Source: Ranitomeya imitator
Lineage: Eukaryota
Assembly (NCBI RefSeq): GCF_032444005.1
Contig: NC_091283.1
Span: 420,422,001 to 420,486,000 of the forward strand
Reading direction: 5' to 3'
Length of the DNA stretch: 64,000 nt
Under the pieces are notes generated by a model that was given only the letters and a program-made list of their open reading frames with translations, ran no database searches and was not told the DNA's origin. Shown here piece after piece: positions 5,706 through 61,782 of this stretch; position 1 is the stretch's first letter, and each line of letters opens with the position of its first letter. The position numbers were made by a program, and so were the translations under genes.

Positions 5706-5850
5706 CAGATATCACGTCTGGCCAGAAGGATTCTAAGCCAATCTTGCCCTTGGCCTTGAGGCATCGGCGGTGTAAAAGCCGTCTTAAGCCTCATGCTGCT
5801 TTAGGGGGCAGATACGCAAAGAAACCAGGAAGGCGATCGACCCTTTGAAG

Positions 5851-11782: not shown

Positions 11783-12052
11783 GGGCGGAGTTATGCAGAT
11801 CAGGCGGAGTTATGCAGATTAGGCGGAGTTAGGCAGATTTTTTAAAAACGCGTTGGGCCCAACTTGAACACACCCCCACACACCCCCACACACCCCCCCA
11901 CACCCCCACACACACCAGAACTGCCATTTGAGAAGGCATCCAGAGTTTAGAAAAAAAATGTCTTCCCCTGGGCAATCATCTTTTGGGCTCTCTCCACAGT
12001 GAGTCCTGGTTGTAGGCCATGGGGCGTCCGGAGTGGCAAACCATTTCAGGCT
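11783..12052 (+). promoter_or_regulatory. U2 promoter (DSE + PSE)
   Basis: Copy of 5423-5683. Confidence 0.85.
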
Positions 12053-12074
12053 ATCGCTTCTCGGCCTTTTGGCT
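12053..12074 (+). ncRNA. RNU2: U2 snRNA 5' fragment (nt 1-22)
   Basis: Exact match, then GCGATC. Confidence 0.95.
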
Positions 12075-12284
12075 GCGATCGATCAGTTTAACTGTGAGAT
12101 TGTAGTCAGGTCGGGTGCTTTCGGTACCCTCTCTCTCGGCCTGGGGGGATCGCTCCTCTTCGGAGGGGCTTCACCCCCCTGCTGCTATAGGGAGAGAGGA
12201 TTAGTCCGGAGCAACGAGTTGCGATCGCCTTAAAAGGGCGCTAGCCTTTTTTTGTGTTTACAGCTGGAGTTCTTTCTCGGAAGG

Positions 12285-13781
12285 ATGCCGGCTGCACTTA
12301 CCTTTGCATCGGGTGAACCCCGGATGAGGAACACGGTCCGTATCGAGGTCTTGGAGAGATTCCGGAAGGAGAAAGAAATCCGCTACGTTTGCAACACCGT
12401 CCTTCTTGGGATCCTGGAGTTCGGCAGAGAGGACATCTTCTGTTTTCAGGACAATGAGCAGAAAGGTACTTATACTATTACCTTTAGGAGCCATGGTTGT
12501 TGTCAGCAGTTGGTCCAAAAGGTGAATGACAACATCTTTGCTGATGAACTGGAGGGCCTGGTCTTCTCCCTGCTTTTCGTCCAAGAGGAGGTACAAATGA
12601 TTGTTTTCTTTCCAAATCCTTTTGTGGAAGTACTGGACATTTTAACCTGTTTGCGTCGCTATTGCGATGAAGTAACCTTTCAAGGGAATGTTAAAAACGC
12701 CGTTGGTTTCTGGTGTGGCAAGCGGAAATTCCTGGTGCGGCTGAAGAAAAATCCGGAGGGCTTTGGAGGAACAGAACATCCCCCCTCTACCATCACCATT
12801 GGGAAGAGCCGTGGCTACTTATTCTACACAGGTATGCCTATGTATTGCAGGAACTGTGGCAAGATGGGGCATACCCAAGGGAATTGTGTGGAAAGAAGGG
12901 CATTCCGCTGCAGCAATTGTGGTCAATTCGGACACTTCATGAAGGATTGCCCTCAAAAGAAGGCTTGTAACCTATGCGGGGAGGTTGGACATATGTTCCG
13001 AGGATGCCCACATAGGACTAAAGTCCGTACGTATGCAGAGGCGGCTGAGAGACCCGTGCCAAGGCAGGAACCAGCTATTGTCCCGGTCCATGCTGAGCTG
13101 AGTATCCCGGAGACCGGAGTAAGGCCTGAGCCAAGTCCCACTGTTCCTACAGCAGGGGAGGCGGCTGAGAAGGCCAAGGGCGCAGAGGAGAAGGTGGGGA
13201 CGGAGCAGGAGTGTGGTGGCCCTCAGGGAGGCCCTCCTGTGTCGAAGTCCCGGAAAAAGGGCGGAGGGCGGACCACCCAGAGACTGGAGCAGGGGGACTC
13301 TCCCGTTGGGGGGGTAACCCTTGTGTCGAAGGTCTCGAATGAGGCTGGTGTGTTGGAGCAGAGCGCCCCCACTATGTTGGCGGTGGGGGGCACTGTGGCG
13401 AAGACCCCAGTCATTCCCAGGGACTCGAGCCAGCAGACCGCAGTTTTTTCTCCTACAGGTGATGGTGTGGATGAGGTCATTGTGCCAGATCCGGAGGCCC
13501 CCCAGGAAGTAAGAGGCCATGTAGCTATCACAGAGGACGACTGTACGAGTGAGCTGCCTGAGCCTTCTGGAAAGAAGCTGCGAGGGGATACTCTTCTGGA
13601 GGCCAATCCAGAGTCTCCGGATGTGTGTTTTCCCAGCGGAGACATGTGGCTGAACACGGACTCTTCTGGGTATCCATTACCGGGTTCCTCGGATCCCCAG
13701 AACATTGACTCTTTTTCCACACTGCCAGATGTGATTGAGGAGTTTATGGAAGTCATTGAGGATATCTCTCCTCCCTCATGA
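12285..13781 (+). CDS. E3 ORF1 zinc-knuckle protein
   Basis: CRNCGKMGH, CSNCGQFGH, CNLCGEVGH; first ATG at 12285. Confidence 0.9.
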   Translation: MPAALTFASGEPRMRNTVRIEVLERFRKEKEIRYVCNTVLLGILEFGREDIFCFQDNEQKGTYTITFRSHGCCQQLVQKVNDNIFADELEGLVFSLLFVQEEVQMIVFFPNPFVEVLDILTCLRRYCDEVTFQGNVKNAVGFWCGKRKFLVRLKKNPEGFGGTEHPPSTITIGKSRGYLFYTGMPMYCRNCGKMGHTQGNCVERRAFRCSNCGQFGHFMKDCPQKKACNLCGEVGHMFRGCPHRTKVRTYAEAAERPVPRQEPAIVPVHAELSIPETGVRPEPSPTVPTAGEAAEKAKGAEEKVGTEQECGGPQGGPPVSKSRKKGGGRTTQRLEQGDSPVGGVTLVSKVSNEAGVLEQSAPTMLAVGGTVAKTPVIPRDSSQQTAVFSPTGDGVDEVIVPDPEAPQEVRGHVAITEDDCTSELPEPSGKKLRGDTLLEANPESPDVCFPSGDMWLNTDSSGYPLPGSSDPQNIDSFSTLPDVIEEFMEVIEDISPPS

Positions 13782-13786
13782 CATAA

Positions 13787-16700
13787 ATGCCATCCATGAG
13801 GTGTCTCTCACTTAATGTGAGATCTCTAAAGAGCCCTGTCCGCAGGGCTGCTCTTTTTGATTTTTTTGAAACATTAGACTTTGATATATGTTTTTTACAG
13901 GAGTGTGGTCTGCAGCATGGAATCCGGTATAACGAGATAAAAAAGGACTGGAAACTAGGGCCCTCTGTATGGTCGGGCTCGAACGAAAACAAGTCTGCTG
14001 GTGTGGGTCTGCTCTGCCGAGGTAATAACATCATCATCTCCTCTGTTACTGAGATTGTACCCGGCAGAGCTATCCTAGTGCATTTGTGTTTTAATAATTT
14101 TAATTTCCGTGTCATTAATGTGTACGCTCCACCAGATAAACAGGAGCGTATACGTTTGTTTGAAATTCTACCGGTATTCTGTGTAGGGTCATCTCCTCTC
14201 TTGGTAGCTGGGGACTTTAATTGCCTGAATGTGCGCCGAGGAGGGGGTGACCCAATCCGTAAGTTAGATAAGTCGTGTTTTTTACTAAATAGCTTGCAGA
14301 CTGATTTTAAGTTATGCGATGCCTGGAGGTCGCTTTCGCCGACGGACCCAGGATTTACATGGTCCGGTCGGGGAGTGGCTTCCAGGATCGATTTTATGTT
14401 TTTATCTGAGGATTTTAGCCCTGTACAATTTGTTTTAATGCCTAATTTATTCTCTGATCATAAAATGTTAAGCGTAAAGATAGAGTATCAAGGAGAGCTG
14501 AGGATAAATAGAGGTTTGTGGCGTCTGGGGGTCCATTTGCTGGAAGACCCTCAGGTGAGGTCAGACTTCTGTAATGCCTACCAGGAATGGAGACAGTTAA
14601 GGCCTCCATATATTAAAATCCTATCCTGGTGGGAAGTGATCAAAGATAAAATAAGGTTTTTTTTTATCAGGGCTGGAAAGAGGAAGGCACAGCGGAAAAA
14701 GCAGATTTATGTGAATTTAAATATGAGACTGCAAACTCTCCATAAATTTAAAGAGATAGGACTAGAGGTGGAAGATGATATTGCAAGCCTAAAAACTGAA
14801 ATACAATTGTGCCTTGATCAAAAAGGTAAAGAAATAATTTTTAATTCCAAAGTGAAACATTTAGAAGAAGGTGAGAAGTGTACACGTTTCTTTTTTAAAA
14901 AAGTGATGGAGAAAAAGGAGACGATCACCTGTCTTGATGGAGAAACAACTGTGGAAGGTATGAAGAAGGTGGCTTTTAATTTTTATAGAGACCTTTTTAG
15001 TAAAAAAAGTGTAAATAATGTTTTTTTACAAGATGCTCTTAATATCCTGGATTTTAAGTTAAGTTCTGTAGACCAGGGGTTTTTAATAGAAGATCTTAGC
15101 ATGGAAGAACTTTTTAGTGTTTTTAAAAGTTTTTCAAAAGGGAAAGCCCCAGGAGCAGATGGTCTACCTGTTGAATTTTATTTGACTTTTTGGGATGTTT
15201 TAAAGGAGGATCTTTTAGCACTTTTTAAAGAGGTTTTTATGTGTTCAGAGCTGCCTAAGTCATGGAGGAGGGGGATAGTGTCCTTAATTTATAAGAAAAA
15301 GGGCGCTCGTGATGACCTCAGAAATTGGAGGCCTATCACCCTCCTCAACATGGACTATAAAGTTTTAGCTAAAATTATTGCTTGTCGTTTTAAAACTGTG
15401 ATTAATAAATTGATACAACCCGAACAAGTATGTGGAGTACCAGGGAGGAATATTGCTGAGATTTTAAATGTTATTAGAGATGCAATATGGTACTCTAGGG
15501 ATAGAAGTCAGAGCCTGGCCCTGTTGGCGCTGGACTTTGAAAAGGCGTTTGACAGGGTCTCGCATGAGTATCTTTTTAAAGTTTTAAAACAAATGGCGAT
15601 CCCCGACATGTTTTTATCTCGTATTATGATTTTATATAATAATGTGTTTTCTCAAATTTCTGTCAATGGTTTTTTAACAGATTTTATCCCGTTGGAATCC
15701 GGAGTGAAGCAGGGGTGTCCATTATCCCCAATTCTTTTTATTTGTGCTATGGAACCCCTGCTGTGTATGATCCGGAGAGATAAAGTGGTCCGAGGGGTTC
15801 CTATTCCGGGTGGAGGAGGGGCCCAAGTCAAAGTATTTGCCTACATGGATGATGTTACTGCCATCTGTACAGATCCTGCTTCACTCCGGAGAGTGGTAAT
15901 GTGCACCAATTTTTTTAGTCAGGCTTCAGGTTTTAAAATGAATTTTAATAAAACTGAATGTTTGATTTTGGGTTCCTGGGATACAAATGACCTACCAGCA
16001 GTAAAATTGAGGCACGACGAGGTAAAAATTTTGGGTATAGTATTTGATGCTAAAAATGATGGACACGTGAGCTGGGAGGAGGTACAGCATAAAATGGTGA
16101 AAAAGCTCTCCTTCTGGAATTTGAGATGCTTGTCGATTGAAGGGAAAATTTTAATTATTAAATCTGTTTTATTGCCTATGATGCTTTATGTTGCCATGGT
16201 ATATCCTCCTTCTGAGTTGATACTAAAAAAACTAACTCGATGTATTTTTATGTTCATTTGGGGATCAAAAATGGAAAAGCTGAGGCGAACGGAAATGTAC
16301 AAGAAACAACAAAATGGAGGAAAAGATGTCCCTGACTTGCATTTGTATTTATATGTAAATTTCTTTTGTTTTTGTTTTAAAGTTTTTAACACTAATTCTA
16401 CTTTTAGTCTGTTTTTAAAATATACTTGCGGTTTTATCTTTAAAAAATGGTTCAGGCCATGTTTATCAGCACCCATTTTATTATGCCCGCCCAAGCATTT
16501 TATTGTTTTAGAAAAGGTGATAAGGACTCATAAATTAAAGGACTTGGATGCCGATCTCCTTCTGGACAGAAAAAAATTGATGGTTCATCTGAGAAGAGAA
16601 GAAGGAGTGTCCCCTGTGAGCAACTTCTCCTGGAGTAGATCCAAGCGTGTGTGGAGGAACGTTTTTGGGAAATTCTTGGCCAACATTCACAAAGACATCG

Positions 16701-17170
16701 CATGGATGGCTGCCCACCAGTGCCTCCCAACCAGAGACTTCCAGCACAGGAGAGGCCTGGTGGCGCGGGCAAAGTGCCCAAGAGACTCTTGCCGAGAGGA
16801 TGAGACTGTTTTGCACCTTTTCTGGAACTGCTGTTTTGCACAAGAACTTTGGGGGAGATTGGGGATACTTTTAAAATGGGTTTGTGGTCTTAAAGATTTT
16901 AGCTATGAGTATGTTTTATATGGACTTTTTAATTGCCCCACTACACACCAGTTCAAAGTATGCTGGTGTATAATAAACTGTGCCAAAAATGCAATCTGGA
17001 AAGCGAGAAACATTTTACTTTTTAACCGTGATTTTATCTCTGTAAATGATTGTATTAAATTGGCTTTTAGTGAAATGTTTATTTATTTCTTAAAGGATGT
17101 TAAAGATGTGGGGAAGAAGGAAGCGAATCGTAGATGGTGTTTTTATATGTGGAATACTGTTTTATATTAA
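13787..17170 (+). CDS. E3 ORF2 APE-RT-CCHC (1127 aa, intact)
   Basis: SLNVR, LQEC, GDFN, SRID, FSDH; DFEKAFD, QGCPLSP, AYMDD. Confidence 0.97.
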   Translation: MPSMRCLSLNVRSLKSPVRRAALFDFFETLDFDICFLQECGLQHGIRYNEIKKDWKLGPSVWSGSNENKSAGVGLLCRGNNIIISSVTEIVPGRAILVHLCFNNFNFRVINVYAPPDKQERIRLFEILPVFCVGSSPLLVAGDFNCLNVRRGGGDPIRKLDKSCFLLNSLQTDFKLCDAWRSLSPTDPGFTWSGRGVASRIDFMFLSEDFSPVQFVLMPNLFSDHKMLSVKIEYQGELRINRGLWRLGVHLLEDPQVRSDFCNAYQEWRQLRPPYIKILSWWEVIKDKIRFFFIRAGKRKAQRKKQIYVNLNMRLQTLHKFKEIGLEVEDDIASLKTEIQLCLDQKGKEIIFNSKVKHLEEGEKCTRFFFKKVMEKKETITCLDGETTVEGMKKVAFNFYRDLFSKKSVNNVFLQDALNILDFKLSSVDQGFLIEDLSMEELFSVFKSFSKGKAPGADGLPVEFYLTFWDVLKEDLLALFKEVFMCSELPKSWRRGIVSLIYKKKGARDDLRNWRPITLLNMDYKVLAKIIACRFKTVINKLIQPEQVCGVPGRNIAEILNVIRDAIWYSRDRSQSLALLALDFEKAFDRVSHEYLFKVLKQMAIPDMFLSRIMILYNNVFSQISVNGFLTDFIPLESGVKQGCPLSPILFICAMEPLLCMIRRDKVVRGVPIPGGGGAQVKVFAYMDDVTAICTDPASLRRVVMCTNFFSQASGFKMNFNKTECLILGSWDTNDLPAVKLRHDEVKILGIVFDAKNDGHVSWEEVQHKMVKKLSFWNLRCLSIEGKILIIKSVLLPMMLYVAMVYPPSELILKKLTRCIFMFIWGSKMEKLRRTEMYKKQQNGGKDVPDLHLYLYVNFFCFCFKVFNTNSTFSLFLKYTCGFIFKKWFRPCLSAPILLCPPKHFIVLEKVIRTHKLKDLDADLLLDRKKLMVHLRREEGVSPVSNFSWSRSKRVWRNVFGKFLANIHKDIAWMAAHQCLPTRDFQHRRGLVARAKCPRDSCREDETVLHLFWNCCFAQELWGRLGILLKWVCGLKDFSYEYVLYGLFNCPTTHQFKVCWCIINCAKNAIWKARNILLFNRDFISVNDCIKLAFSEMFIYFLKDVKDVGKKEANRRWCFYMWNTVLY

Positions 17171-17288: not shown

Positions 17289-17439
17289 ATCTGTTCTTAT
17301 CAGTTTAATATCTGATACGTCCCCTATTTGGGGACCATATATTAAATGGATTTTTAGAACAGGGAGCTGGAAATGGAGCTTGCTCTGTCCACTCCACGCA
17401 TTGACCCGATATTGCAGTATCTTCGGGAACAGTGCACCC
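17289..17439 (+). ncRNA. RNU2: U2 snRNA 3' fragment (nt 38-188), variant B
   Basis: CCCGATATTGCAGTATCTTCGGG in stem-loop IV. Confidence 0.97.
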
Positions 17440-18450
17440 CTTCTCTGATCCGGTTTCTAAAAACAGATTGAATTGAATTGAAATCAGCAGAGCAAGTTGT
17501 CATTTAACCCTTTCTGAGAATTCTTTTCAGGGTCAAAGAAGCACGTTTCAGATGGCAAATGTAGCAATTTGCTCAATTTCACTGGACCGTTTGCAACATT
17601 TCCTGTGCCTTGCTTTCACCTGTGCATGTTCAGCATTGGATTGCATCCAATATGCAATCAATCAAGCAATCAAGCAATCTTTGCTGGTTGCAACAGGTGT
17701 GTTTAGATGTAGGCCCGAATGAGGCCTTTGTAGCAGTGTTGCTAATATATTGTGCCATCTACAAAATTAGGCCCCTGCTGTCTGTCTGTCAGTATGAAGT
17801 GTTTAAATTGAAGTATCCTACGAGTAGTTCGGCCATACATACTCCATTTGTGACCGCATGCACAAATTACTTTGTAAAACATTGGCTCCCTCTTGTGGAC
17901 CACAGACTTTTAATTATGTGGTGTATGATATGTATTTAAATAAAGAAGGAAAAATGGGGTGGGTCTGTGAAGATCTTGCTTGAATGTGCTAGTCTTGTCC
18001 ATCTTGTCTTGCACTGTGTGAGTAGTATTCTAATGCTTTTGACCAATTAGGTGCGCTGCTGCTGACTGCAGTAGATAGAATCTGTGCACGGAACCTTCAC
18101 CTGCTGTCACAATGGGGCCTTCAGCCATTGACTCCGGAACTCTCACGTGTCACAATGGGCTCTGGACCTATCTAAGGCAGAGAAAAATGGCGCCGTCTTC
18201 AGTCTGCTGCTGGAGCAGCAGCAGACCACATGGTAGGGGGATTGTCTGTCTGTGCCCAGCTTCAGGGCAGCTGGCAAGACAACTGCTAGCCCGTCTGGTG
18301 TTTGAATTACACACTCGCTCTGCCCGTTTCTTGAATAGCCCTCTTTACCTTGACAAGTCAGCTGGTATGTCACTCTCCATCCATCAGGAGGAACGTTACC
18401 CCTTAGACCCCAGTCCAGTGCCTCTCACTTAGCCAAATCAGTTCTCTTGC

Positions 18451-18495
18451 TTCGCACTGACGAGGGCCAAGAGCCCTAAACACCGTGTCTGCGAA
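18451..18495 (+). ncRNA. Type I hammerhead ribozyme fold with G12U
   Basis: TTCGCA-CTGACGA-GGGC caaga GCCC-TAAA-CA ccg TG-TC-TGCGAA. Confidence 0.75.
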
Positions 18496-18600
18496 TTGAG
18501 ATGCTGTTGTTTTTTGTTTTTTTTTGTAAAGGGGCAATTTGTAGACCTGCACTAATAGTTGCACTCTTTAGCGCAAAAGGGATGGAGGGTGTGTTCAAAT

Positions 18601-18865: not shown

Positions 18866-19107
18866 GATTTTCTTGCATTTGGTCGAAGTCCTTTAGGTGC
18901 CTGGGGTACCCCGCCTCTCGGCCTTGGGTGCGGGTCCCACTCTTGTAGTGGGATCCAATCCCTTGTTGCTATAGGGAGGTGGGCTTAGTCCCTAGGCAAC
19001 GAGTTGCGATCGCCCTAGCCAGGTAGTCTTTGGATTACTTGGTGCCCTTCTTTGTTGCGGAACACTCCCGTTTGTTGCGGAACACCCCCGTTTTTTTCCT
19101 TATAACC

Positions 19108-25785: not shown

Positions 25786-25819
25786 ATCGCTTCTCGGCCT
25801 TTTGGCTCAGATCAAGTGT
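25786..25819 (+). ncRNA. RNU2: U2 snRNA 5' fragment (nt 1-34, A23C)
   Basis: ...GGCTCAGATCAAGTGT. Confidence 0.93.
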
Positions 25820-25946
25820 CTGACCAGGAGGTTCTTTGAGTGCTGTCCCTCGGCCTTCTGGCATCGCCACTTCGGTGGCTTAAGCCAGATGCTGCTATAG
25901 GGGGATAGTGAGGAAGGAACGAGAAGGCGATCCTTGAGGCGTGACT

Positions 25947-27259
25947 ATGGGAGTCAAGCTGCAATTCGCTGGGACCGGGATCCCCGGGTCAAGAATGGAT
26001 TCCGGATTGAGGTCGCTGAAGAGAAGAAGGGACACTTCTCCCTGTCCTACTTGGTGAATGCCATCTTCTATGATGCCTTGAAGATAAAGAAGTCGGATAT
26101 CGTTTGCCTGCAAGAGTTTCGGAGAGATGGAAGGTATGTGCTGGTTCTTTCTACTATGGCTGCTTGCCAAAACCTGTTCAGAACTTTGACTGGCTTGAAA
26201 GAGAGCACCCTTCTGGATGGACTTATCTTCACTGTACTTTATTCTAAGGGGGATGTCCCAGTGGTTGTGTTCATGCACAATCCTTTTTGCTCCCAGGATA
26301 GTATCACTGCTTTCCTGAGGAGGCATTGTGTTTTTGTGCAGTTCTCCCACAGGATAAATAATGAGGAGGGCCTGTGGACGGGAAAATACAAATACTTTGT
26401 TAGGTTTGCGGTGGACCCCCAGGGACCAGGGGGTATTCACTATCCGCCTATGAGTTTTACAATCGGAAGAGATACTGGCTTCTTGTATTTCCCTGATGCT
26501 CCTTTCTTTTGTAGAAGGTGTAGCACTTATGGCCATATCCAAGAGTCCTGCAGTAGTCAGCCAACCTGCAGGAGGTGTAATGAGACCGGTCACATAGCGA
26601 GAGATTGTAAAAACCAGGTGAAGTGTGATGCGTGTGGTGAGGATGGACATGTCCTTCGGGAGTGTCGGGCCAGAACCACACCTAGGTCCTTTGCACAAGT
26701 GACCGCGGTCAGGCCTGCTACTCCAGCTGTGGTTGCTGAAGCTCCAGTGAGTTCCCTAGCAGATATCGGGGAGGCAGTTGCTTCCAGAGAGGAAGAGGAG
26801 TCACCTCTCCCTTTCCAGTTTGGTGCCCGTGCAACTACAGATAGTGTTGTTCTGGTGCCTGCTAAAAAAACTAAAAAAAAGTATGGGAATCTGGGTTTGG
26901 AGAAAGCTTTGGTAAAAGCATTAAAGAATGTGCAAAGAGGCTTTTCAAGTGCTGAAGGAGGGGAGCGCCCGGACACCCTGCAGTTGCAGGACGCTGAAGA
27001 GGGCGCGGAATGTATGGAGACTTCTGTACATCTTTCAGATCCGGAGTATATTGAAGAGTTTTGTTCTGATGATGGTGGTGAGAGTGGAAAGCATCACGGA
27101 GGAGGTAGTGGGGAAAGTGACCGAGAAAAGGAGGATGTGGCACCTCAGAGAAAAGCAGGTGTCAAGAAATCAAGGTGGAGTGAGAGTGGAGAGGCCAGCG
27201 GGTCGGAAACCAGCCACTCGTTGCAGATGGTAGAGGATGATGGTGGAGGAACTGGCTAA
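25947..27259 (+). pseudogene. E5 ORF1 with -1 frameshift at G-run 25977-25979
   Basis: E6 has GGGG at this site and an open frame from the same ATG. Confidence 0.85.
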
Positions 27260-27398
27260 AGTGGTCTGGAAATATGCATAAGTGTTTTTTTTCTTTTTTC
27301 TGTTTTTTGTTTTTTTTCTTTTTTTTGAGCTTTGACTTAAGTCAAAGGCTTTCTATTTTTGCTTGTATAGCATATGTTTTGTTTTTCCAGCCTTAAGC

Positions 27399-30300
27399 AT
27401 GGTATTCACTATTGTCTCACAAAATGTGAGGGTGTTTAAAAATAGGTGTAGAAGGGCTGCAATTTTTGATTTTTTAGCTCTGAAAAATGCATCGATTTTT
27501 TTGTTTGCAAGAGTGTGGGGTGGTGGATGGTGTGAAAGGGGATGAGTGGCCTTATGGGGCATCAGTATGGTCTGGGAGTGCATGTAATAAGAATGATGGT
27601 GTGGGAATTTTGGTAAAGGGGCGGGAAGTTGTTTTGAATGATTATGTGGTTATTGAGGTGGGTAGGTGCATATTAGCAAATTTTGTGTATAGAAATGTGA
27701 AATTTTGCATTATTAATGTTTATGCGCCGGTGGATAAGAATGAGCGGAAAGATTTGTTTGAAAAAATTAAATTTTTTGTGCCGGGGAGAATGCCTGTGGT
27801 GATTGTGGGTGATATGAATTGTGATGTGGGGAAAGTGAATGTGGATGTGTCTGGTAAGGTTTTATTAGATTTGGTTAGTGATTTTGGGTTGAGAGACATG
27901 CAGCGTTTGTGTAAAGTGAGTCCGTTGTTGAATACTTTTTTTTCTGAGAGTGGAAAAATACAATCTAGGTTGGATTATTGTTTTATTTAAAAAAATATGG
28001 TTTCCATTAGTTATAAGCAGGAGAATGTTTTGTTTTCAGATCATGTGTGTGTGTCGTGTGAGGTGGATATAAATGTAAATGGTGTGTTTGGTAGGGGTTT
28101 ATGGAAATTAAATTGTAAGTTGCTGGAGAATGTGGAGGTGAGGAAGGTGTATGTAAGATGTTATAAAGAGTGGTGTGAGGGTAAGAGTGGTTTTGGGAAT
28201 GTGTGTGAGTGGTGGGATTGGGTTAAAAAACGGACAAAAATTTTCTTTAAAGATGTAGGATATAAGGTTGCTGCAATTAAGAGAGAAAAATTTGTGAGCT
28301 TAAATGCGCATCTAAATTTATTGTATATTTTGAGGGAAGGAGGAGTGGTGGTGGAGGAGGAGATTTTGGTGGTAAAGAAGGAAATTCATGAATTTTTGAT
28401 GGAGAGGGGAAGGAGTATTGTGTTTAGGTCTAAGGTTGATAGGTTGGAGCATGATGAGAAATGCTCACGGTTTTTTTTCAAGAAGGTCTTTGGGGAGAAA
28501 CAAAGTATGAATGTGCTGTGTGGGGCTGATGGGAGAGAAGTATGTGGGGAGGATATGTGTGAGGAGGTAGCAAAGTTTTATGAGGATTTGTATGCGGTGA
28601 AGTGGAGGGATGGAAATTTGGAAGATGAAGTGTTGTGTGTGTTAGAGAATAAGTTGAGTGAGGTAGATAAAGGGAGTGTGATGAGTGAAGTGACAGATGA
28701 TGAGGTTTGGAAGGTAATGAATAGTATGGCGTTAAATAAAACGCCGGGGGAAGATGGTCTGCCTGTAGAGTTTTATCGAGTGATGTGGGAGGTGATTGGT
28801 AAGGATTTTGTGGAGGTTTGTAAATATATGTGGGCAAATATGGAAGTGGCTGAGAGTATGCGTGCGGGTATGGTGGTGTTAATACCAAAGAAAGGTGATT
28901 TGAGAAATATTAAGAATTGGAGACCGATAACATTATTAAATTGCGATTATAAAATCTATGCAAAGGTAATGGCAAATAGAATGCGTGATGTGATAGGGAG
29001 TGTGATTGGGGATGAACAATGTTGTGCGGTGCCTGGAAGGCGTATACATGAGTGTGTGTGTATGTTGCGGGATTGTTTGTGGGATTGCAAGAGTCGCAAG
29101 AGAGGTGTGTTTTTGTTAAGTCTGGATTTTGAAAAAGCGTATGATAGGTTGTCGCATAGTTTTTTGTTTAGAGTGTTGTTAAAAATGGGTTTTCCGGCTG
29201 AGTTTGTTGGGAGAGTGAGAAGTCTATATAAGAATATTTATAGTTGTATTTTGATGAATGGTTATGTTGGGAGGAGAGTGAATGTTTTTTCGGGTGTGCG
29301 TCAGGGGTGTCCTATGTCTCCTGTGGCTTTTATTTGTGCTATTGAACCATTGCTTTGTATGTTAAGAAAGGATAAGGTGATTCGGGGCGTACAAGTGCCG
29401 GGTGGAGGGGGTAGGGAATGGAAGGTTAGTGGTTATATGGATGACGTGTGTGTATTATGTGATTCAGAATGTTCAGTGGGACGGGTAAAGTTATTAGTGT
29501 CTATTTTTTGTGGTGCGTCTGCTTTTAAAGTTAATTGGGAGAAAAGTGAATGTAAGAGTTTTGGGGGAGGATCTTTGAGTAAGTATGTTGGTGTGAATGA
29601 AGTAAAGGGGCCTATTAAGGTGTTAGGTGTTAAGTTTTCTGAGAGACTGGATGGGAAGGAAAGTTGGGATGATGCGAAAGAGAAAGTTGAGAGGAAGTTG
29701 TGTTTTTGGAGGTTGAGAAGCCTTACTTTTTTTGGGAAAATTTTGATTATAAAGAGTATAGTGTTGCCTATTTTTTTGTATATTGCGCTGGTTTTTCCGC
29801 CAGGGTATATGTGTTTGAGAGGGTTAAATAGGGTACTGTTTGTTTTTTTATGGAATTCTAGAATGGAGAGGGCAAAGAGAGAAACTTTGGTAAAGCGTTT
29901 GGAAAAGGGTGGTTTGAATTTTCCTAACCTTGAAGTTTTTTTTGGTGTAAATAGTGTGTTGTATGTTTTGAGGATGATTAGGGCAGATGGAAAAAATTCA
30001 TGTATGTGTAGGTATTTGTTTGGGGCTTATTTGTTTCGTTTAAGGTGGTGGGAGAGAGATTTGCGGTGTCTGGTGGCGTTTGAAGTGCCTGTATGGTATG
30101 TGTGGGTTTATAAATTTTTGATGAAGTATGAGTTGTGTGATGTGGATATTCGGTTGTTGAGTAATAAGAAGGCTGTGTATAGGATGATTGAGTGTAGAGA
30201 GACAGATTGTGATATCAATATGGTTAGAGGGTTGGATGTACAGAAAGTGTGGAAGAAGGTACGAATGGATGGTATGACAAATAGACAGAGTGAGATTGTG

Positions 30301-30771
30301 TGGCAGTCATTGCATGGAGTATTACCTGTGAGAGAATTTCAAAGGAACCGTGGTTTGGTGAGAAGGGAGATATGTCCGAGAGAGGGTTGTGGTGGAAGTG
30401 AGAGTGTGATACATGTTTTTTGGAATTGTAAGTATGCTAGGAATGTGATTGCAAGAATGGGGCCTTTATGTAAAGAATTGGGTGGTGTGAGTTTGTTATC
30501 TTTTGAGGTGTTTATGTTTGGTTTGGGAATGTGTGATGGTGAGAAAGGAAGAGTGTTGTGGTTGATGCTTGCATGTATAAAGGAAGTGTTGTGGGATGTA
30601 AGGAATGTGTATGTTTTCAAGAGGAAAGCTATTTTAGTTAAGGATTGTGTAAGGGTGATTTTGGGGAAATTGTATGTTTGTTATTTGTGGGAGGTGAAGA
30701 GGAGAGGGGAGTTTGATGCAGAGGCCATTTGGAAGGTAAAGAAATGGAGATATTTTGTGAATACTTCTTGA
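27399..30771 (+). pseudogene. E5 ORF2: +1 frameshift at T-run 27496-27502 and in-frame TAA at 27988-27990
   Basis: Comparison with E6; RT part 27997..30771 is open. Confidence 0.9.
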
Positions 30772-32514: not shown

Positions 32515-32548
32515 ATCGCTTCTCGGCCTTTTGGCTCAGATCAAGTGT
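32515..32548 (+). ncRNA. RNU2: U2 snRNA 5' fragment (nt 1-34, A23C)
   Basis: Same junction as E5. Confidence 0.93.
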
Positions 32549-32675
32549 CTGACCAGGAGGTTCTTTGAGTGCTGTCCCTCGGCCTTCTGGCATCGCCACT
32601 TCGGTGGCTTAAGCCAGATGCTGCTATAGGGGGATAGTGAGGAAGGAACGAGAAGGCGATCCTTGAGGCGTGACT

Positions 32676-33989
32676 ATGGGAGTCAAGCTGCAATTCGCTG
32701 GGACCGGGGATCCCCGGGTCAAGAATGGATTCCGGATTGAGGTCGCTGAAGAGAAGAAGGGACACTTCTCCCTGTCCTACTTGGTGAATGCCATCTTCTA
32801 TGATGCCTTGAAGATAAAGAAGTCGGATATCGTTTGCCTGCAAGAGTTTCGGAGAGATGGAAGGTATGTGCTGGTTCTTTCTACTATGGCTGCTTGCCAA
32901 AACCTGTTCAGAACTTTGACTGGCTTGAAAGAGAGCACCCTTCTGGATGGACTTATCTTCACTGTACTTTATTCTAAGGGGGATGTCCCAGTGGTTGTGT
33001 TCATGCACAATCCTTTTTGCTCCCAGGATAGTATCACTGCTTTCCTGAGGAGGCATTGTGTTTTTGTGCAGTTCTCCCACAGGATAAATAATGAGGAGGG
33101 CCTGTGGACGGGAAAATACAAATACTTTGTTAGGTTTGCGGTGGACCCCCAGGGACCAGGGGGTATTCACTATCCGCCTATGAGTTTTACAATCGGAAGA
33201 GATACTGGCTTCTTGTATTTCCCTGATGCTCCTTTCTTTTGTAGAAGGTGTAGCACTTATGGCCATATCCAAGAGTCCTGCAGTAGTCAGCCAACCTGCA
33301 GGAGGTGTAATGAGACCGGTCACATAGCGAGAGATTGTAAAAACCAGGTGAAGTGTGATGCGTGTGGTGAGGATGGACATGTCCTTCGGGAGTGTCGGGC
33401 CAGAACCACACCTAGGTCCTTTGCACAAGTGACCGCGGTCAGGCCTGCTACTCCAGCTGTGGTTGCTGAAGCTCCAGTGAGTTCCCTAGCAGATATCGGG
33501 GAGGCAGTCGCTTCCAGAGAGGAAGAGGAGTCACCTCTCCCTTTCCAGTTTGGTGCCCGTGCAACTACAGATAGTGTTGTTCTGGTGCCTGCTAAAAAAA
33601 CTAAAAAAAAGTATGGGAATCTGGGTTTGGAGAAAGCTTTGGTAAAAGCATTAAAGAATGTGCAAAGAGGCTTTTCAAGTGCTGAAGGAGGGGAGCGCCC
33701 GGACACCCTGCAGTTGCAGGACGCTGAAGAGGGCGCGGAATGTATGGAGACTTCTGTACATCTTTCAGATCCGGAGTATATTGAAGAGTTTTGTTCTGAT
33801 GATGGTGGTGAGAGTGGAAAGCATCACGGAGGAGGTAGTGGGGAAAGTGACGGAGAAAAGGAGGATGTGGCACCTCAGAGAAAAGCAGGTGTCAAGAAAT
33901 CAAGGTGGAGTGAGAGTGGAGAGGCCAGCGGGTCGGAAACCAGCCACTCGTTGCAGATGGTAGAGGATGATGGTGGAGGAACTGGCTAA
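32676..33989 (+). CDS. E6 ORF1 zinc-knuckle protein (intact)
   Basis: CRRCSTYGH, CRRCNETGH, CDACGEDGH. Confidence 0.9.
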   Translation: MGVKLQFAGTGDPRVKNGFRIEVAEEKKGHFSLSYLVNAIFYDALKIKKSDIVCLQEFRRDGRYVLVLSTMAACQNLFRTLTGLKESTLLDGLIFTVLYSKGDVPVVVFMHNPFCSQDSITAFLRRHCVFVQFSHRINNEEGLWTGKYKYFVRFAVDPQGPGGIHYPPMSFTIGRDTGFLYFPDAPFFCRRCSTYGHIQESCSSQPTCRRCNETGHIARDCKNQVKCDACGEDGHVLRECRARTTPRSFAQVTAVRPATPAVVAEAPVSSLADIGEAVASREEEESPLPFQFGARATTDSVVLVPAKKTKKKYGNLGLEKALVKALKNVQRGFSSAEGGERPDTLQLQDAEEGAECMETSVHLSDPEYIEEFCSDDGGESGKHHGGGSGESDGEKEDVAPQRKAGVKKSRWSESGEASGSETSHSLQMVEDDGGGTG

Positions 33990-34128
33990 AGTGGTCTGGA
34001 AATATGCATAAGTGTTTTTTTTCTTTTTTCTGTTTTTTGTTTTTTTTCTTTTTTTTGAGCTTTGACTTAAGTCAAAGGCTTTCTATTTTTGCTTGTATAG
34101 CATATGTTTTGTTTTTCCAGCCTTAAGC

Positions 34129-37100
34129 ATGGTATTCACTATTGTCTCACAAAATGTGAGGGTGTTTAAAAATAGGTGTAGAAGGGCTGCAATTTTTGAT
34201 TTTTTAGCTCTGAAAAATGCATCGATTTTTTGTTTGCAAGAGTGTGGGGTGGTGGATGGTGTGAAAGGGGATGAGTGGCCTTATGAGGCATCAGTATGGT
34301 CTGGGAGTGCATGTAATAAGAATGATGGTGTGGGAATTTTGGTAAAGGGGCGGGAAGTTGTTTTGAATGATTATGTGGTTATTGAGGTGGGTAGGTGCAT
34401 ATTAGCAAATTTTGTGTATAGAAATGTGAAATTTTGCATTATTAATGTTTATGCGCCGGTGGATAAGAATGAGCGGAAAGATTTGTTTGAAAAAATTAAA
34501 TTTTTTGTGCCGGGGGGAATGCCTGTGGTGATTGTGGGTGATATGAATTGTGATGTGGGGAAAGTGAATGTGGATGTGTCTGGTAAGGTTTTATTAGATT
34601 TGGTTAGTGATTTTGGGTTGAGAGACATGCAGCGTTTGTGTAAAGTGAGTCCGTTGTTGAATACTTTTTTTTCTGAGAGTGGAAAAATACAATCTAGGTT
34701 GGATTATTGTTTTATTTAAAAAAATATGGTTTCCATTAGTTATAAGCAGGAGAATGTTTTGTTTTCAGATCATGTGTGTGTGTCGTGTGAGGTGGATATA
34801 AATGTAAATGGTGTGTTTGGTAGGGGTTTATGGAAATTAAATTGTAAGTTGCTGGAGAATGTGGAGGTGAGGAAGGTGTATGCAAGATGTTATAAAGAGT
34901 GGTGTGAGGGTAAGAGTGGTTTTGGGAATGTGTGTGAGTGGTGGGATTGGGTTAAAAAACGGACAAAAAATTTCTTTAAAGATGTAGGATATAAGGTTGC
35001 TGCAATTAAGAGAGAAAAATTTGTGAGCTTAAATGCGCATCTAAATTTATTGTATATTTTGAGGGAAGGAGGAGTGGTGGTGGAGGAGGAGATTTTGGTG
35101 GTAAAGAAGGAAATTCATGAATTTTTGATGGAGAGGGGAAGGAGTATTGTGTTTAGGTCTAAGGTTGATAGGTTGGAGCATGATGAGAAATGCTCACGGT
35201 TTTTTTTCAAGAAGGTCTTTGGGGAGAAACAAAGTATGAATGTGCTGTGTGGGGCTGATGGGAGAGAAGTATGTGGGGAGGATATGTGTGAGGAGGTAGC
35301 AAAGTTTTATGAGGATTTGTATGCGGTGAAGTGGAGGGATGGAAATTTGGAAGATGAAGTGTTGTGTGTGTTAGAGAATAAGTTGAGTGAGGTAGATAAA
35401 GGGAGTGTGATGAGTGAAGTGACAGATGATGAGGTTTGGAAGGTAATGAATAGTATGGCGTTAAATAAAACGCCGGGGGAAGATGGTCTGCCTGTAGAGT
35501 TTTATCGAGTGATGTGGGAGGTGATTGGTAAGGATTTTGTGGAGGTTTGTAAATATATGTGGGCAAATATGGAAGTGGCTGAGAGTATGCGTGCGGGTAT
35601 GGTGGTGTTAATACCAAAGAAAGGTGATTTGAGAAATATTAAGAATTGGAGACCGATAACATTATTAAATTGCGATTATAAAATCTATGCAAAGGTAATG
35701 GCAAATAGAATGCGTGATGTGATAGGGAGTGTGATTGGGGATGAACAATGTTGTGCGGTGCCTGGAAGGCGTATACATGAGTGTGTGTGTATGTTGCGGG
35801 ATTGTTTGTGGGATTGCAAGAGTCGCAAGAGAGGTGTGTTTTTGTTAAGTCTGGATTTTGAAAAAGCGTATGATAGGTTGTCGCATAGTTTTTTGTTTAG
35901 AGTGTTGTTAAAAATGGGTTTTCCGGCTGAGTTTGTTGGGAGAGTGAGAAGTCTATATAAGAATATTTATAGTTGTATTTTGATGAATGGTTATGTTGGG
36001 AGGAGAGTGAATGTTTTTTCGGGTGTGCGTCAGGGGTGTCCTATGTCTCCTGTGGCTTTTATTTGTGCTATTGAACCATTGCTTTGTATGTTAAGAAAGG
36101 ATAAGGTGATTCGGGGCGTACAAGTGCCGGGTGGAGGGGGTAGGGAATGGAAGGTTAGTGGTTATATGGATGACGTGTGTGTATTATGTGATTCAGAATG
36201 TTCAGTGGGACGGGTAAAGTTATTAGTGTCTATTTTTTGTGGTGCGTCTGCTTTTAAAGTTAATTGGGAGAAAAGTGAATGTAAGAGTTTTGGGGGAGGA
36301 TCTTTGAGTAAGTATGTTGGTGTGAATGAAGTAAAGGGGCCTATTAAGGTGTTAGGTGTTAAGTTTTCTGAGAGACTGGATGGGAAGGAAAGATGGGATG
36401 ATGCGAAAGAGAAAGTTGAGAGGAAGTTGTGTTTTTGGAGGTTGAGAAGCCTTACTTTTTTTGGGAAAATTTTGATTATAAAGAGTATAGTGTTGCCTAT
36501 TTTTTTGTATATTGCGCTGGTTTTTCCGCCAGGGTATATGTGTTTGAGAGGGTTAAATAGGGTACTGTTTGTTTTTTTATGGAATTCTAGAATGGAGAGG
36601 GCAAAGAGAGAAACTTTGGTAAAGCGTTTGGAAAAGGGTGGTTTGAATTTTCCTAACCTTGAAGTTTTTTTTGGTGTAAATAGTGTGTTGTATGTTTTGA
36701 GGATGATTAGGGCAGATGGAAAAAATTCATGTATGTGTAGGTATTTGTTTGGGGCTTATTTGTTTCGTTTAAGGTGGTGGGAGAGAGATTTGCGGTGTCC
36801 GGTGGCGTTTGAAGTGCCTGTATGGTATGTGTGGGTTTATAAATTTTTGATGAAGTATGAGTTGTGTGATGTGGATATTCGGTTGTTGAGTAATAAGAAG
36901 GCTGTGTATAGGATGATTGAGTGTAGAGAGACAGAGTGTGATATCAATATGGTTAGAGGGTTGGATGTACAGAAAGTGTGGAAGAAGGTACGAATGGATG
37001 GTATGACAAATAGACAGAGTGAGATTGTGTGGCAGTCATTGCATGGAGTATTACCTGTGAGAGAATTTCAAAGGAACCGTGGTTTGGTGAGAAGGGAGAT

Positions 37101-37500
37101 ATGTCCGAGAGAGGGTTGTGGTGGAAGTGAGAGTGTGATACATGTTTTTTGGAATTGTAAGTATGCTAGGAATGTGATTGCAAGAATGGGGCCTTTATGT
37201 AAAGAATTGGGTGGTGTGAGTTTGTTATCTTTTGAGGTGTTTATGTTTGGTTTGGGAATGTGTGATGGTGAGAAAGGAAGAGTGTTGTGGTTGATGCTTG
37301 CATGTATAAAGGAAGTGTTGTGGGATGTAAGGAATGTGTATGTTTTCAAGAGGAAAGCTATTTTAGTTAAGGATTGTGTAAGGGTGATTTTGGGGAAATT
37401 GTATGTTTGTTATTTGTGGGAGGTGAAGAGGAGAGGGGAGTTTGATGCAGAGGGCATTTGGAAGGTAAAGAAATGGAGATATTTTGTGAATACTTCTTGA
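34129..37500 (+). pseudogene. E6 ORF2 with in-frame TAA at 34717-34719
   Basis: ORFs 34093..34719 and 34726..37500 are in the same frame. Confidence 0.9.
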
Positions 37501-39242: not shown

Positions 39243-39264
39243 ATCGCTTCTCGGCCTTTTGGCT
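39243..39264 (+). ncRNA. RNU2: U2 snRNA 5' fragment (nt 1-22)
   Basis: Exact match, then GCGATCTTGTGT. Confidence 0.95.
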
Positions 39265-39366
39265 GCGATCTTGTGTCGCGGTCAGGGGGTGCGAGTGATT
39301 CCTGGCAGCGTGCTGCTGATTTGCTACTGCGGTCTTTGTACCGGCAGAGAAGATTGAAGAGAGAAG

Positions 39367-40692
39367 ATGTTCATCAAGAATACCATTCGTGTGGTCGTGG
39401 AAGGAAGTGCCAGAAATAATGTGGTTTTCGTGGTTCGTGACCTGCTGGAGGAAAAGGCTGGAGCTCACCGGACTGACATTTTCAGCGTTAACGAGTTCCG
39501 GAATCAAGGTATATATGATGTTACCTTTGTGAGTGAGCCGTGTTGCTTAACTATCTTTGAGTGGCTCAGAAGTCATGATGGTGATCCATGCCTGGAAGGA
39601 GTGCGGGTGGAGCCTTTGTTTGGGCTAATGGAGAAAGTGGTGACTGTTACGGTGTATAACCCTTACACTGAAGTAAGTTTGCTGGAGCAGTTCCTGGCTC
39701 GTTATTGCGAGTATGTGAAGGGTGGAGAGAAGCAAAAAAATTGCTTGGGGATCTTTAACTGTAAATACGTGTTTCGTGTGAAACTGAGGAGGGACCCAAG
39801 TTGTTTGGGAGGCTTCGCCCATCCCCCGGCGAACTTTTCAGTAGCAGGGCAAAGGGGCTTCCTGACATATGCAGGGCAGCCTCTATACTGTAGGAAGTGT
39901 TTTCAGTTTGGGCACTTACAGAGTACCTGTGAGAAAAGTATGGTTTGCCGCAATTGTAAACAGGAGGGCCATATGGCGGCTCAGTGTCCAATGCCACGTG
40001 AGTGTGACCAGTGTGGAGACATAGGGCACCTGTATAGGGACTGTCCATATGCTGGGCCGAGGAGGCCAACCAGAGAGGAGGAGAGGCGGGAGGAGGAAGG
40101 AAAAAAGCGTGAGGAGCGGAGGCAGGAGGAGGAGAAAAAGAGAGAGGAGGAGGTGAAGAAACGGGAAGAGGAGAGGAGGCAGGAGGAAAGCAAGTCTTCT
40201 GCGCAGGAGAGCGCTGAGATAATTCCGCCCTCTATGGTTGAGAGACGGCGGGATAGAAGGCAGGAGGACAAGGAGGCTGAAAGGAGGAAGGAGGAGCTGG
40301 AGGACAAATTATTTTGGAGAGCCGCAAAGCAGGAAGAGCGTGCTATGACTTATAAAAGTAAGAAAAAAAAGAAGGTTCCAGTTACTAATACAGAGGAGTT
40401 GGGTGCGCTGATGGATTTTGATACTTCTGGGGCGGAGGAGATGGTTGATCCTGTGATTCCGGAATCTGACCCAATAAATATAGGTGCTTTTTCCTCACAA
40501 GAGGAGCCTGGAGGTCGAAAGTGTCCCAGGGAGGGTGGTGGGGAAAATTTTGACTTTGAGGTTCCAGAAGCAGGAGTGCCCCAGAGAAAGGTTGGGCGGA
40601 AGAAGTCACGTGTGGAGGAGTGTATGGAGGTCAGCGGCTCTGAAAGCTGCTCGGCGCAGATGGTGGAGGAGGACAGTGGCGACACTGCTTAG
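39367..40692 (+). CDS. E7 ORF1 zinc-knuckle protein with E/K/R-rich tract
   Basis: CRKCFQFGH, CRNCKQEGH, CDQCGDIGH. Confidence 0.9.
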   Translation: MFIKNTIRVVVEGSARNNVVFVVRDLLEEKAGAHRTDIFSVNEFRNQGIYDVTFVSEPCCLTIFEWLRSHDGDPCLEGVRVEPLFGLMEKVVTVTVYNPYTEVSLLEQFLARYCEYVKGGEKQKNCLGIFNCKYVFRVKLRRDPSCLGGFAHPPANFSVAGQRGFLTYAGQPLYCRKCFQFGHLQSTCEKSMVCRNCKQEGHMAAQCPMPRECDQCGDIGHLYRDCPYAGPRRPTREEERREEEGKKREERRQEEEKKREEEVKKREEERRQEESKSSAQESAEIIPPSMVERRRDRRQEDKEAERRKEELEDKLFWRAAKQEERAMTYKSKKKKKVPVTNTEELGALMDFDTSGAEEMVDPVIPESDPINIGAFSSQEEPGGRKCPREGGGENFDFEVPEAGVPQRKVGRKKSRVEECMEVSGSESCSAQMVEEDSGDTA

Positions 40693-40868
40693 CTATGTGC
40701 TTTTTTTTTCAGTAGCTAAGCGTTTTTGTACATAGCTTTTGCCGTTAAATTGTGTTTTGTATATTGCAGTTGCTTTAAAATGTTTTTTTTTTTTTTTTTT
40801 CTCATATAAGTTGTTTAATGTCCTTTTTGTAGGTTGTTTGCTTTAGTGTTTTTGTTTCTGTGTATATT

Positions 40869-43800: not shown

Positions 43801-44272
43801 TGTATGGCAGTCATTGCATGGGGTGTTACCGGTGAGGGAGTTTCAGAAAAATCGGGGTTTAGTGAGGAGTGAGAAGTGTCCGAGGAGTGGATGTGGTGGA
43901 AGTGAGAGCGTGGTGCATTTGTTTTGGAATTGTCAGTACGCTAGAAGTGTGATTGCAGGGTTGGGTCGTTTGTGTAAGGAGCTGTGTGAGGTGAATCTGT
44001 TGTCTTTTGAGCTTTTTATGTTTGGATTGGGTATGTGTGGGGAAAAGGAGAGAGTATTGTGGTTAATGATGGCATGTATAAAAGAGGTTTTGTGGGATGT
44101 GAGGAATATATATGTGTTTAAAAGGAAGGATATTGAAGTTAAAAATTGTATAAGGATTATTTTGGGAAAATTGTATTTTTGTTTTGTGTGTGATCAGAGG
44201 AGGAGAGGGGAGGTGGATGCAGAGGGAATTTGGAAAACCAAAAAATGGAAACATTTTGTTAATGTATCTTGA
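40869..44272 (+). pseudogene. E7 ORF2 with two homopolymer frameshifts (~41711-41724 and 42217-42221)
   Basis: Three overlapping track ORFs give a continuous APE-RT-CCHC protein. Confidence 0.88.
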
Positions 44273-46012: not shown

Positions 46013-46217
46013 GACCATATAGTTGCTGCCCTGGTCTTGACTGGAAGGTGCCTGGGGTACCCGGCTCCTTGGCCTGGGGGGATTGTCTCACTTATGGTGG
46101 GACTTCACCCCCCTGCTGCTATTAGGGAGCTGGATTAGTCCCCAGGCAACGAGTCGCGATCCCCCGGCGTAAGGCCGAGCCCGTCTTCACGGCAAGCCTT
46201 AAGCCAAAACTGCTGCG

Positions 46218-51506: not shown

Positions 51507-51657
51507 ATCTGTTCTTATCAGTTTAATATCTGATACGTCCCCTATTTGGGGACCATATATTAAATGGATTTTTAGAACAGGGAGCTGGAAATGGAGCTTG
51601 CTCTGTCCACTCCACGCATTGACCCGATATTGCAGTATCTTCGGGAACAGTGCACCC
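51507..51657 (+). ncRNA. RNU2: U2 snRNA 3' fragment (nt 38-188)
   Basis: Variant B sequence. Confidence 0.97.
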
Positions 51658-54254: not shown

Positions 54255-54299
54255 TTCGCACTGACGAGGGCCAAGAGCCCTAAACACCGTGTCTGCGAA
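54255..54299 (+). ncRNA. Hammerhead fold, G12U
   Basis: As 18451-18495. Confidence 0.72.
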
Positions 54300-54671: not shown

Positions 54672-54894
54672 GATTTTCTTGCATTTGGTCGAAGTCCTTT
54701 AGGTGCCTGGGGTACCCCGCCTCTCGGCCTTGGGTGCGGGTCCCACTCTTGTAGTGGGATCCAATCCCTTGTTGCTATAGGGAGGTGGGCTTAGTCCCTA
54801 GGCAACGAGTTGCGATCGCCCTAGCCAGATAGTCTTTGGATTACTTGGTGCCTTTCCTTGTTGCGGAACACCCCCGTTTTTTTTCCTTATAACC

Positions 54895-61568: not shown

Positions 61569-61782
61569 ACGATCTGTAGTGGATTGTGGCATTAGGCTAA
61601 TGGTGTGTGTAGTGAAAGTTCTGATTCTTGGCCTCGTGGAGATATCCCTTGCTGCTATTGGGAGTCGGTTTGGAAGCTGCAGTACCTTTTTTCCCGGAGG
61701 ACGGTGTGTTGGAGGTGGACCCGATCTGTGGAGGCTGCGATCGAATTGCTTGTTCCAGTGTAATCTGTGACCAAGAAGAAGA

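Follow-up and report, generated by a model that had tools for sequence, protein, structure and literature searches.

The U2 snRNA array and its inserted LINEs

The window, meaning here the whole 64-kb stretch of Ranitomeya imitator DNA that was analysed, is a poison-frog U2 snRNA array. Nine matches to U2 snRNA, approximately 6.7 kb apart, were found in it with Rfam, and direct reading of the junctions revealed that each U2 copy is interrupted after about nt 36 by a LINE. A unit consists of the U2 promoter, U2 nt 1 to ~36, an insertion of 5-6 kb, and U2 nt 37 to the end with the 3' box; the insertions are placed 3' of the intact U2 promoter and 5' of the U2 Sm site and 3' box. According to Pfam, ORF1 of the insertions carries two ZCCHC3-type RNA-binding domains and a zinc knuckle (zf-CCHC), and ORF2 carries an AP endonuclease (Exo_endo_phos), a reverse transcriptase (RVT_1) and zf-RVT. 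Because of this domain content and the insertion site at U2 nt 36/37, the insertions are classed as Keno-type LINEs of the Tx1 clade; like Keno, they combine the same target and a 3' junction at U2 nt 36/37 with ORF1 and an APE-RT ORF2. Keno elements were reportedly introduced by Kojima and Fujiwara in 2004 as U2 snRNA gene-specific LINEs. In two later papers, Keno is described as targeting the same U2 snRNA site in frogs, fish, lancelet and hydra (PMC4640811, PMC4494074), and the insertion site is as given there for Keno and Utopia (PMC4640811).

Identity between element families is 25-36% for ORF1 and 37-52% for ORF2, and by sequence the families are judged to be old. The pairs E4/E9 and E5/E6 are the only near-identical ones. 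Over aligned columns, ORF1 of E3 shares 99% identity with a protein of Ranitomeya imitator. The inter-unit spacers are 96.5-99.8% identical to one another. The spacer 5' of E9 (51508-54635) measures 3128 bp, with ~1.6 kb of extra sequence relative to the ~1540 bp found elsewhere. The spacers 5' of E2 and E3 are ~215 bp shorter than the others and form a 99.5%-identical pair (the region 18240-18500 is also cited in this connection).

Table 1. Positions of the leader motif, its parts in E3 and the neighbouring features in the window.
Feature	Position	Strand	Description
Motif, family E2	5742..5812	+	3' loop UGCUGCUUUA; covariance model 76.5 bits, fold, pattern
E3 leader 5' of motif	12053..12127	+	U2 nt 1-22, then family-specific decayed copy of U2 nt 23-36
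Motif, family E3	12128..12199	+	MFE -44.5 kcal/mol, z -3.65; covariance model 92.6 bits; pair counts
E3 motif, helix Pa	12128-12137 with 12190-12199		
E3 motif, helix GGC/GCU	12138-12140 with 12184-12186		GGC pairs with GCU
E3 motif, first internal loop	12141-12142 facing 12180-12183		CU faces UGCU
E3 motif, helix Pb	12143-12148 with 12174-12179		
E3 motif, second internal loop	12149-12151 facing 12170-12173		AUC faces UUCA
E3 motif, helix Pc	12152-12158 with 12163-12169		UUCG loop
E3 motif, bulge	12187-12189		AUA
CGAGUUGCGAU	12215..12225	+	complementary to U2 nt 1-11; junction closing-helix segment
ORF1 of E3	12285..13781	+	two ZCCHC3-type RNA-binding domains, zinc knuckle
ORF2 of E3	13787..17170	+	AP endonuclease and reverse transcriptase
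Motif, family E4	18910..18983	+	3' loop UGUUGCUAUA, longer Pc; covariance model 66.2 bits, fold, pattern
Motif, family E5	25842..25909	+	covariance model 75 bits, fold, pattern
Motif, E6	32571..32638	+	identical to E5; pattern, covariance model
Leader of E7	39243..39366	+	U2 leader and GAGAAG antisense segment, no motif
Motif, family E8	46061..46133	+	covariance model 87.7 bits, fold, pattern
Motif, E9	54716..54789	+	identical to E4; pattern, covariance model
Motif, family E10, short form	61621..61668	+	covariance model 44 bits, z -0.8, pattern

Fold, covariation and distribution of the leader motif

Nine 5' leaders are visible; eight of them, representing six families, contain a short RNA motif (Table 1). 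All eight copies are on the + strand, 56-85 nt 3' of U2 +1 and 5' of ORF1. The pattern GGCCT-N15-45-TGYTGCTWTW has 8 matches in the 64 kb, where 0.06 are expected, and none of 100 shuffles reached 8. With a covariance model of the six families in the window, only the 8 leader sites were recovered, at 44-93 bits, the next match scoring 12 bits; with a model of 12 sequences and the filters off, the sites scored 38-87 bits and the best other match 13.6 bits. The same search found no copy of the motif in the 3' UTRs of the elements. The consensus fold is composed of Pa (9-10 bp), a 3-bp helix GGC/GCU, an internal loop CU//UGYW, Pb (6 bp), a second internal loop AUC//UUMA, and a hairpin, Pc, variable in sequence and length; an AUW bulge sits between GCU and the 3' strand of Pa. 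This shape is the MFE structure of every copy folded alone, with z between -2.7 and -5.7, and only -0.8 in E10. The short form of E10 retains Pa, GGCCU and UGCUGCUAUU, its Pb is reduced, and Pc is absent. An earlier note, made from the letters alone, had described a motif common to six divergent families; pattern, covariance model and fold bear this out in each family, and the positions given for the copies are accurate to within 2 nt. The variants quoted for Pa and Pb pair as described there, as does the second loop AUY/UUMA.

Covariation was assessed on 12 distinct sequences, comprising the window families and further Keno copies, aligned by fitting to the covariance model. In this alignment, which by its construction favours the structure, 92.7% of the pair cells hold standard pairs, compared with 45-55% after a shift of the 3' partners by 1-3 columns. 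Both sides have changed in 19 of the 26 pairs, and such cells number 65 against 21.7 in shuffles; no shuffle of 500 equalled the observed value on any of five measures, although the sequences are related and this control overstates significance, a weakness from which the slid-partner control is free. In the window-only alignment both-side changes are present in 16 of 26 pairs. RNAalifold independently recovered the same helices, with compensatory changes in 17 of its 23 pairs. In the first copy of L001, one of the further elements described below, UGCCU is found together with ...GCAAUU, a change of G.U to U-A in the otherwise invariant GGC/GCU helix. Mean pairwise identity is 79.5% in the internal-loop and bulge columns and 58% in the stem columns, and 16 unpaired nucleotides are near-fixed (CU//UGYW, AUC//UUMA and the AUW bulge). 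The evidence of selection is unusually clean in that these 16 loop nucleotides are nearly unchanged and every helix has been rewritten, at 25-50% protein identity. The matching stem substitutions described in the earlier note are present, and its proposal of a selected, structured RNA is upheld by the strong covariation, the near-invariant loops, the strand-specific fold and the recurrence in other species. Judged by these patterns, the motif is a real, selected, folded RNA element.

The strands are not equivalent. At the E3 site the 12-sequence model scores 87 bits on the + strand and 8 bits on the reverse, and pairing drops from 92.7% on the + strand to 78% on the opposite one. G.U accounts for 44 of the 300 pair cells, including an invariant U.G in Pa. 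Because of these 44 G.U pairs and the asymmetry of 87 versus 8 bits, the structured molecule is taken to be the sense RNA, and neither the antisense strand nor a DNA cruciform or other double-stranded DNA signal. A contig from a related species shows no difference over 12110-12199, whereas the 109 nt that follow contain 2 indels and 2 substitutions, a small positive hint. Low-depth Logan contigs examined for transcript ends are fragmentary, and one run marked "RNA?" covers the spacer too.

An ORF1 profile was searched against 1.84 billion representative proteins, and the best full-length matches were traced to Logan contigs. Six further copies of the motif were found in four more Keno families (two each in L001 and L007, one each in L011 and L012), scoring 56-77 bits with the covariance model. 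L001, L007 and L012 come from one set of runs and L011 from another run; all four start with the U2 leader. Their ORF1s are nearest to proteins of Xenopus tropicalis (43-64%) or Hyla sarda (47%), and the hosts are probably other anurans. In total, the motif is distributed over 10 Keno families in at least three species. L001 and L007 have tandem copies in a single 5' UTR (75-151 and 306-376 in L001, 74-144 and 298-369 in L007), the first inside the leader junction described below and the second 3' of it. Several Logan contigs (L001-L003, L007-L008, L011-L013) begin 2-7 nt 5' of U2 +1. These ends were considered as transcript starts and rejected: they are artefacts of graph branching at k=31, because the first family-specific base lies at contig position 31 in each.

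The motif is not indispensable for every Keno, because E7 and a sturgeon element lack it. In the E7 leader no motif was detected by the covariance model with filters off or by folding. ORF2 of E7 is 78% identical to that of the motif-bearing E5/E6 and its ORF1 only 29%; E7 (39243-44272) has the appearance of a recombinant whose 5' module was exchanged relative to E5/E6 (25786-30771, 32515-37500). It is a degenerate copy with a fragmented ORF2, and because of this it says little about active elements. The sturgeon Keno, L004, has an ORF1 identical to fragments from Acipenser sinensis and a 70-nt leader in which the covariance model found no motif. Its contig (1-4900) runs from 6 nt 5' of U2 +1 via the leader, ORF1 and ORF2 back into U2 nt 39 onward. 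The L004 leader gives a 12-bit match to the model, in which the position of the motif's 5' strand is taken by the genuine U2 nt 5-15, and a competing hairpin in that leader is more stable than the motif-like match; the weak match may hint at an ancestral arrangement. In a further Tx1-type element, L014, whose ORF1 is nearest to a catfish protein, an uninterrupted U2 nt 26-45 is present in the 5' UTR (30-55) and spans the Keno site, reflecting either a different insertion site or a captured U2 segment.

Relation of the motif to U2 snRNA and the leader junction

The octamer CTCGGCCT of the motif is identical to U2 nt 8-15, as had been noted from the sequence earlier, and in related elements the identity reaches 10-12 nt (U2 nt 5/7-16). 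Of 12 copies, 8 contain 8-12 nt that match U2 nt 5-16 exactly, the longest match, 12 nt (CTTCTCGGCCTT), being that of L012. The sequence (Y)CUCGGCCU(U), which makes up the motif's 5' strand, is thereby a copy of U2 nt 5/8-16. The earlier note had gone further and suggested a remodelled U2 stem-loop I. The U2-like 5' half fits this suggestion, which is reasonable as regards the origin of the motif. The 3' loop UGYWGCUAUW has no convincing source in U2. In the motif GGC pairs with GCU as U2 G11-C13 pair with G20-U22. U2 nt 1-11 are paired in U2/U6 helix II, and the pyrimidine run of the motif likewise pairs with a purine strand. Unlike stem-loop I (CUCGGCCUUUUGGCU, with a 4-bp stem and a UUUU loop), the motif has CU, a two-helix hairpin of ~40 nt and UGYW in place of the UUUU loop, and its 3' strand reads GCU, not GGCU. 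The fourth base pair is missing, and the 3' loop and AUW bulge are without U2 counterpart. The Rfam U2 model, applied to the E3 leader and four related leaders, scores only the genuine U2 leader and not the motif. By sequence, the motif is derived from stem-loop I or resembles it and is not itself a stem-loop I; its probable origin is an internal duplication of the U2 5' end or stem-loop I, the loop of which expanded into a hairpin.

Two other resemblances to U2 were recorded. In the 3' strand of Pa of E8 (46124-46134), the 11 nt AGGGAGCTGGA are identical to U2 nt 110-120, which belong to the region of stem-loop III; no shuffle of 500 gives a match of this length, a result that is borderline with 12 sequences tested, and the other families share only GGGAG. 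The 3' loop of E3, UGCUGCUAUA (12180-12189), can form 9 of 10 pairs with the loop of U2 stem-loop IV, UAUUGCAGUA (~17408-17419), which lies 3' of it in the same putative U2-LINE-U2 transcript; with a chance estimated at ~0.17 for an RNA of 190 nt, the pairing is not significant and was discarded.

The motif is embedded in a larger structured leader. In E3, the stretch 5' of the motif also holds the pairing partner of its nt 23-36 copy (junction arm A). Segments equivalent to the one complementary to U2 nt 1-11, of the form G(C/U/G)GAUC, are found 3' of the motif in the motif-bearing families of the window and in L001, L007, L011 and L012. The whole leaders of E2, E4, E6 and E8 are predicted to fold as a three-way junction, with z of -3.3 to -7.2. 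Its closing helix joins U2 nt 1-5 and 8-11 with the downstream CGAG..GCGAU, family-specific sequence is the partner of U2 nt 12-36 in the second arm, and the third arm bears the motif on an extension stem. In the predicted fold of E3 the motif arm is kept and the closing helix is absent; U2 nt 1-3 alone pair, with the far 3' end. The E10 leader folds weakly (z -0.7), also without the closing helix. In E5/E6 and E2 the changed leader bases form a hairpin of their own in the predicted fold. Since leader nt 22-36 differ by family in the midst of near-identical spacers, the leader is part of the element and is copied along with it. Co-transcription with U2 is suggested by this element-borne U2 leader.

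Candidate roles of the motif

Judging from the carried U2 nt 1-22 and the nt 23-36 copy, the elements are most probably transcribed from the U2 promoter. The motif is best explained as a cis-acting structured domain of the Keno sense RNA, an approximately 72-nt rod of three helices (Pa with GGC/GCU, Pb and Pc). Its helices change freely by compensation, and the fixed loops with the invariant U.G wobble would offer a single conserved partner a surface on which to dock; this partner would be required in the life cycle for RNP assembly, for trafficking or for handling of the U2-promoter transcript. That the motif is such a recognition platform is given about an even chance. A slow-evolving partner is favoured because the loops are the same across coexisting families with 25-50% identical proteins; in this respect the fast-evolving ORF1p is a less likely candidate than either a host factor or a highly conserved ORF2p surface. 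A special form of the recognition platform, in which the motif, together with the paired U2 leader, mimics the U2 5' domain and engages host snRNP or Cajal-body machinery, for instance a factor or guide RNP that ordinarily acts on the 5' end of U2, is considered unlikely. Cajal bodies associate with U2 gene arrays, and if the mimicry were true, this link would deliver the LINE RNP to its sole target.

The best precedent for a 5' RNA directing its own protein or processing is the 5' RNA of R2, with its HDV-like ribozyme and the 5' pseudoknot bound by the R2 protein. Both are conserved, covarying 5' structures of a site-specific LINE co-transcribed with a multicopy RNA-gene target; the Keno motif, as part of the 5' UTR, belongs to a target-specific LINE which would be co-transcribed in this manner, and its structure is kept by compensatory change across divergent lineages. 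R2 differs in belonging to another clade and in its restriction-like endonuclease, single ORF and Pol I co-transcript. Its RNA is a nested pseudoknot at the extreme 5' end, conserved in shape but not in sequence, whereas the motif is an unbranched rod that starts 56-85 nt into a leader which is probably capped; its loops are invariant in sequence, and one of its strands derives from U2. Short hairpins with fixed loop nucleotides are likewise known from the 3' UTRs of stringent-type LINEs and the R2 3' RNA. LINE 3' UTR stem-loops serve in cis as recognition sites for the reverse transcriptase. They lie where reverse transcription starts; the motif is instead at the 5' end.

A role in translation control, by which the cap-proximal helix and stable leader would make ORF1 dependent on internal initiation or on initiation aided by structure, with the fixed loops in contact with the 40S subunit or an initiation factor, is likewise improbable. 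The leaders are predicted to be very stable (-67 to -122 kcal/mol) and to pair from nt 1, and invariance of the loops between families would be expected if the partner were a conserved one of the host, for example the ribosome. Motif and ORF1 AUG, however, are ~21 to 125 nt apart, unlike in IRESs that position the AUG exactly, some elements have two copies of the motif, and a mini-uORF (AUG CUG CUA UAG) is present only in some families. No Rfam IRES family matched the E3 leader or the four related leaders.

Quite unlikely is a function in escape from the constraints of an snRNA promoter, the motif counteracting Integrator or premature termination, or keeping the U2 leader from treatment as U2. 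Long transcripts from snRNA promoters are processed poorly, and these elements, with an RNA of 5-6 kb, are located between an intact U2 promoter and the U2 Sm site and 3' box; the predicted junction also pairs the U2 leader with element sequence. Against this, the sturgeon Keno and E7 manage without the motif. The motif resembles no known anti-termination RNA.

It is very unlikely that the motif is a new class of self-cleaving RNA that processes the U2-LINE co-transcript as HDV-like ribozymes do in R2. Its ~16 conserved unpaired nucleotides, set in covarying helices, resemble ribozyme cores, and 5' ribozymes are known from other co-transcribed site-specific LINEs; among LINEs they occur in R2, Baggins and L1Tc. 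The earlier note, which had raised self-cleavage, could not match the motif to HDV, hammerhead, twister or pistol, and the Rfam search agrees. In a permissive cmscan with the Rfam 15 ribozymes (HDV-like, hammerhead, twister, twister-sister, pistol, hatchet, hairpin, VS and hovlinc), none was matched at E<=10 in 12000-12400 or at E<=1 in L001, L007, L011 and L012, and none reached the gathering score anywhere in the window. By inspection the nested double pseudoknot of HDV is absent: the 5 nt (GGCCU) between Pa and Pb, the only ones there in all 12 sequences, are too few for HDV-like P3, L3 and P1 strands. The conserved loops are split by a continuous 6-bp helix, which makes docking as in the hairpin ribozyme unlikely. 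A Pol II transcript starting at U2 +1 would be capped and 5' processing would be unneeded. The 56-85 nt 5' of the motif are family-specific, paired within the leader and transmitted in the RNA template, and contigs from other species run through the motif, although those runs may not be RNA. Because reverse-transcribed templates keep the 56-85 nt upstream, cleavage in the R2 style is opposed, and the motif is not a ribozyme of the R2 kind that defines a 5' end. With no Rfam ribozyme, no room for the HDV pseudoknot and an element-borne upstream leader, the self-cleaving reading is not supported, although some of the RNAs may be cleaved in part.

Hardly credible is a non-functional relic of the U2 5' end, kept similar by recombination with the target or by recent inter-family exchange, or a DNA-level promoter or cruciform signal, since a 5' strand that equals U2 nt 5-16 and the swappable 5' modules seen in E7 speak for a relic, but stems with identity down to 58% and 19 compensatory pairs beside fixed loops that include the non-U2 UGYWGCUAUW speak against it, and the G.U pairs and strand asymmetry given above exclude a DNA-level signal.

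Keno itself is already known. The motif is absent from Rfam, and the Keno papers found cover target specificity and mention no 5' leader RNA structure (PMC4640811, PMC4494074). Structured 5' RNAs are central to processing and integration of R2, and none comparable is known to have been described for the AP-endonuclease Tx1/Keno branch. The motif incorporates a copy of the start of its target gene and is placed in a junction that pairs the U2 leader, which points to an interplay of retrotransposon RNA and snRNA biology. It also offers a defined handle of ~70 nt for pull-downs, probing and mutational tests, at a time when target-specific LINEs are being explored as gene-insertion tools, and the covariance model could be used to map Keno-type leaders across vertebrate genomes.

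Several known RNA elements were compared with the motif and rejected. Rfam matches to mir-1188 and SCARNA20 (16 and 15 bits, E>1) are noise. By inspection there is no kink-turn, as the AUW bulge is followed by G-C, G.U and G-C pairs and not by tandem G.A. An H/ACA pocket is contradicted, as neither ANANNA nor an ACA box is present at a constant spacing and U2 does not contain the target that such a pocket would imply. The 11-nt tetraloop receptor agrees with AUC//UUAA at 8 of 11 positions in E5; E3 and E8 have lost its A-A platform, and the loops of Pc are not of the GNRA type. With the AUUGCAC loop of the U1A/U2B'' type only UUGC is shared, and only in E4. A conserved uORF, AUG CUG CUA UAG, requires a 3' strand of Pb ending in A and an AUA bulge, and is not conserved. 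A three-codon uORF, AUG CUG CUA/CUU UAG, is present within the 3' loop in E5/E6 (25889-25900), L012 and E2, and not in the other families.
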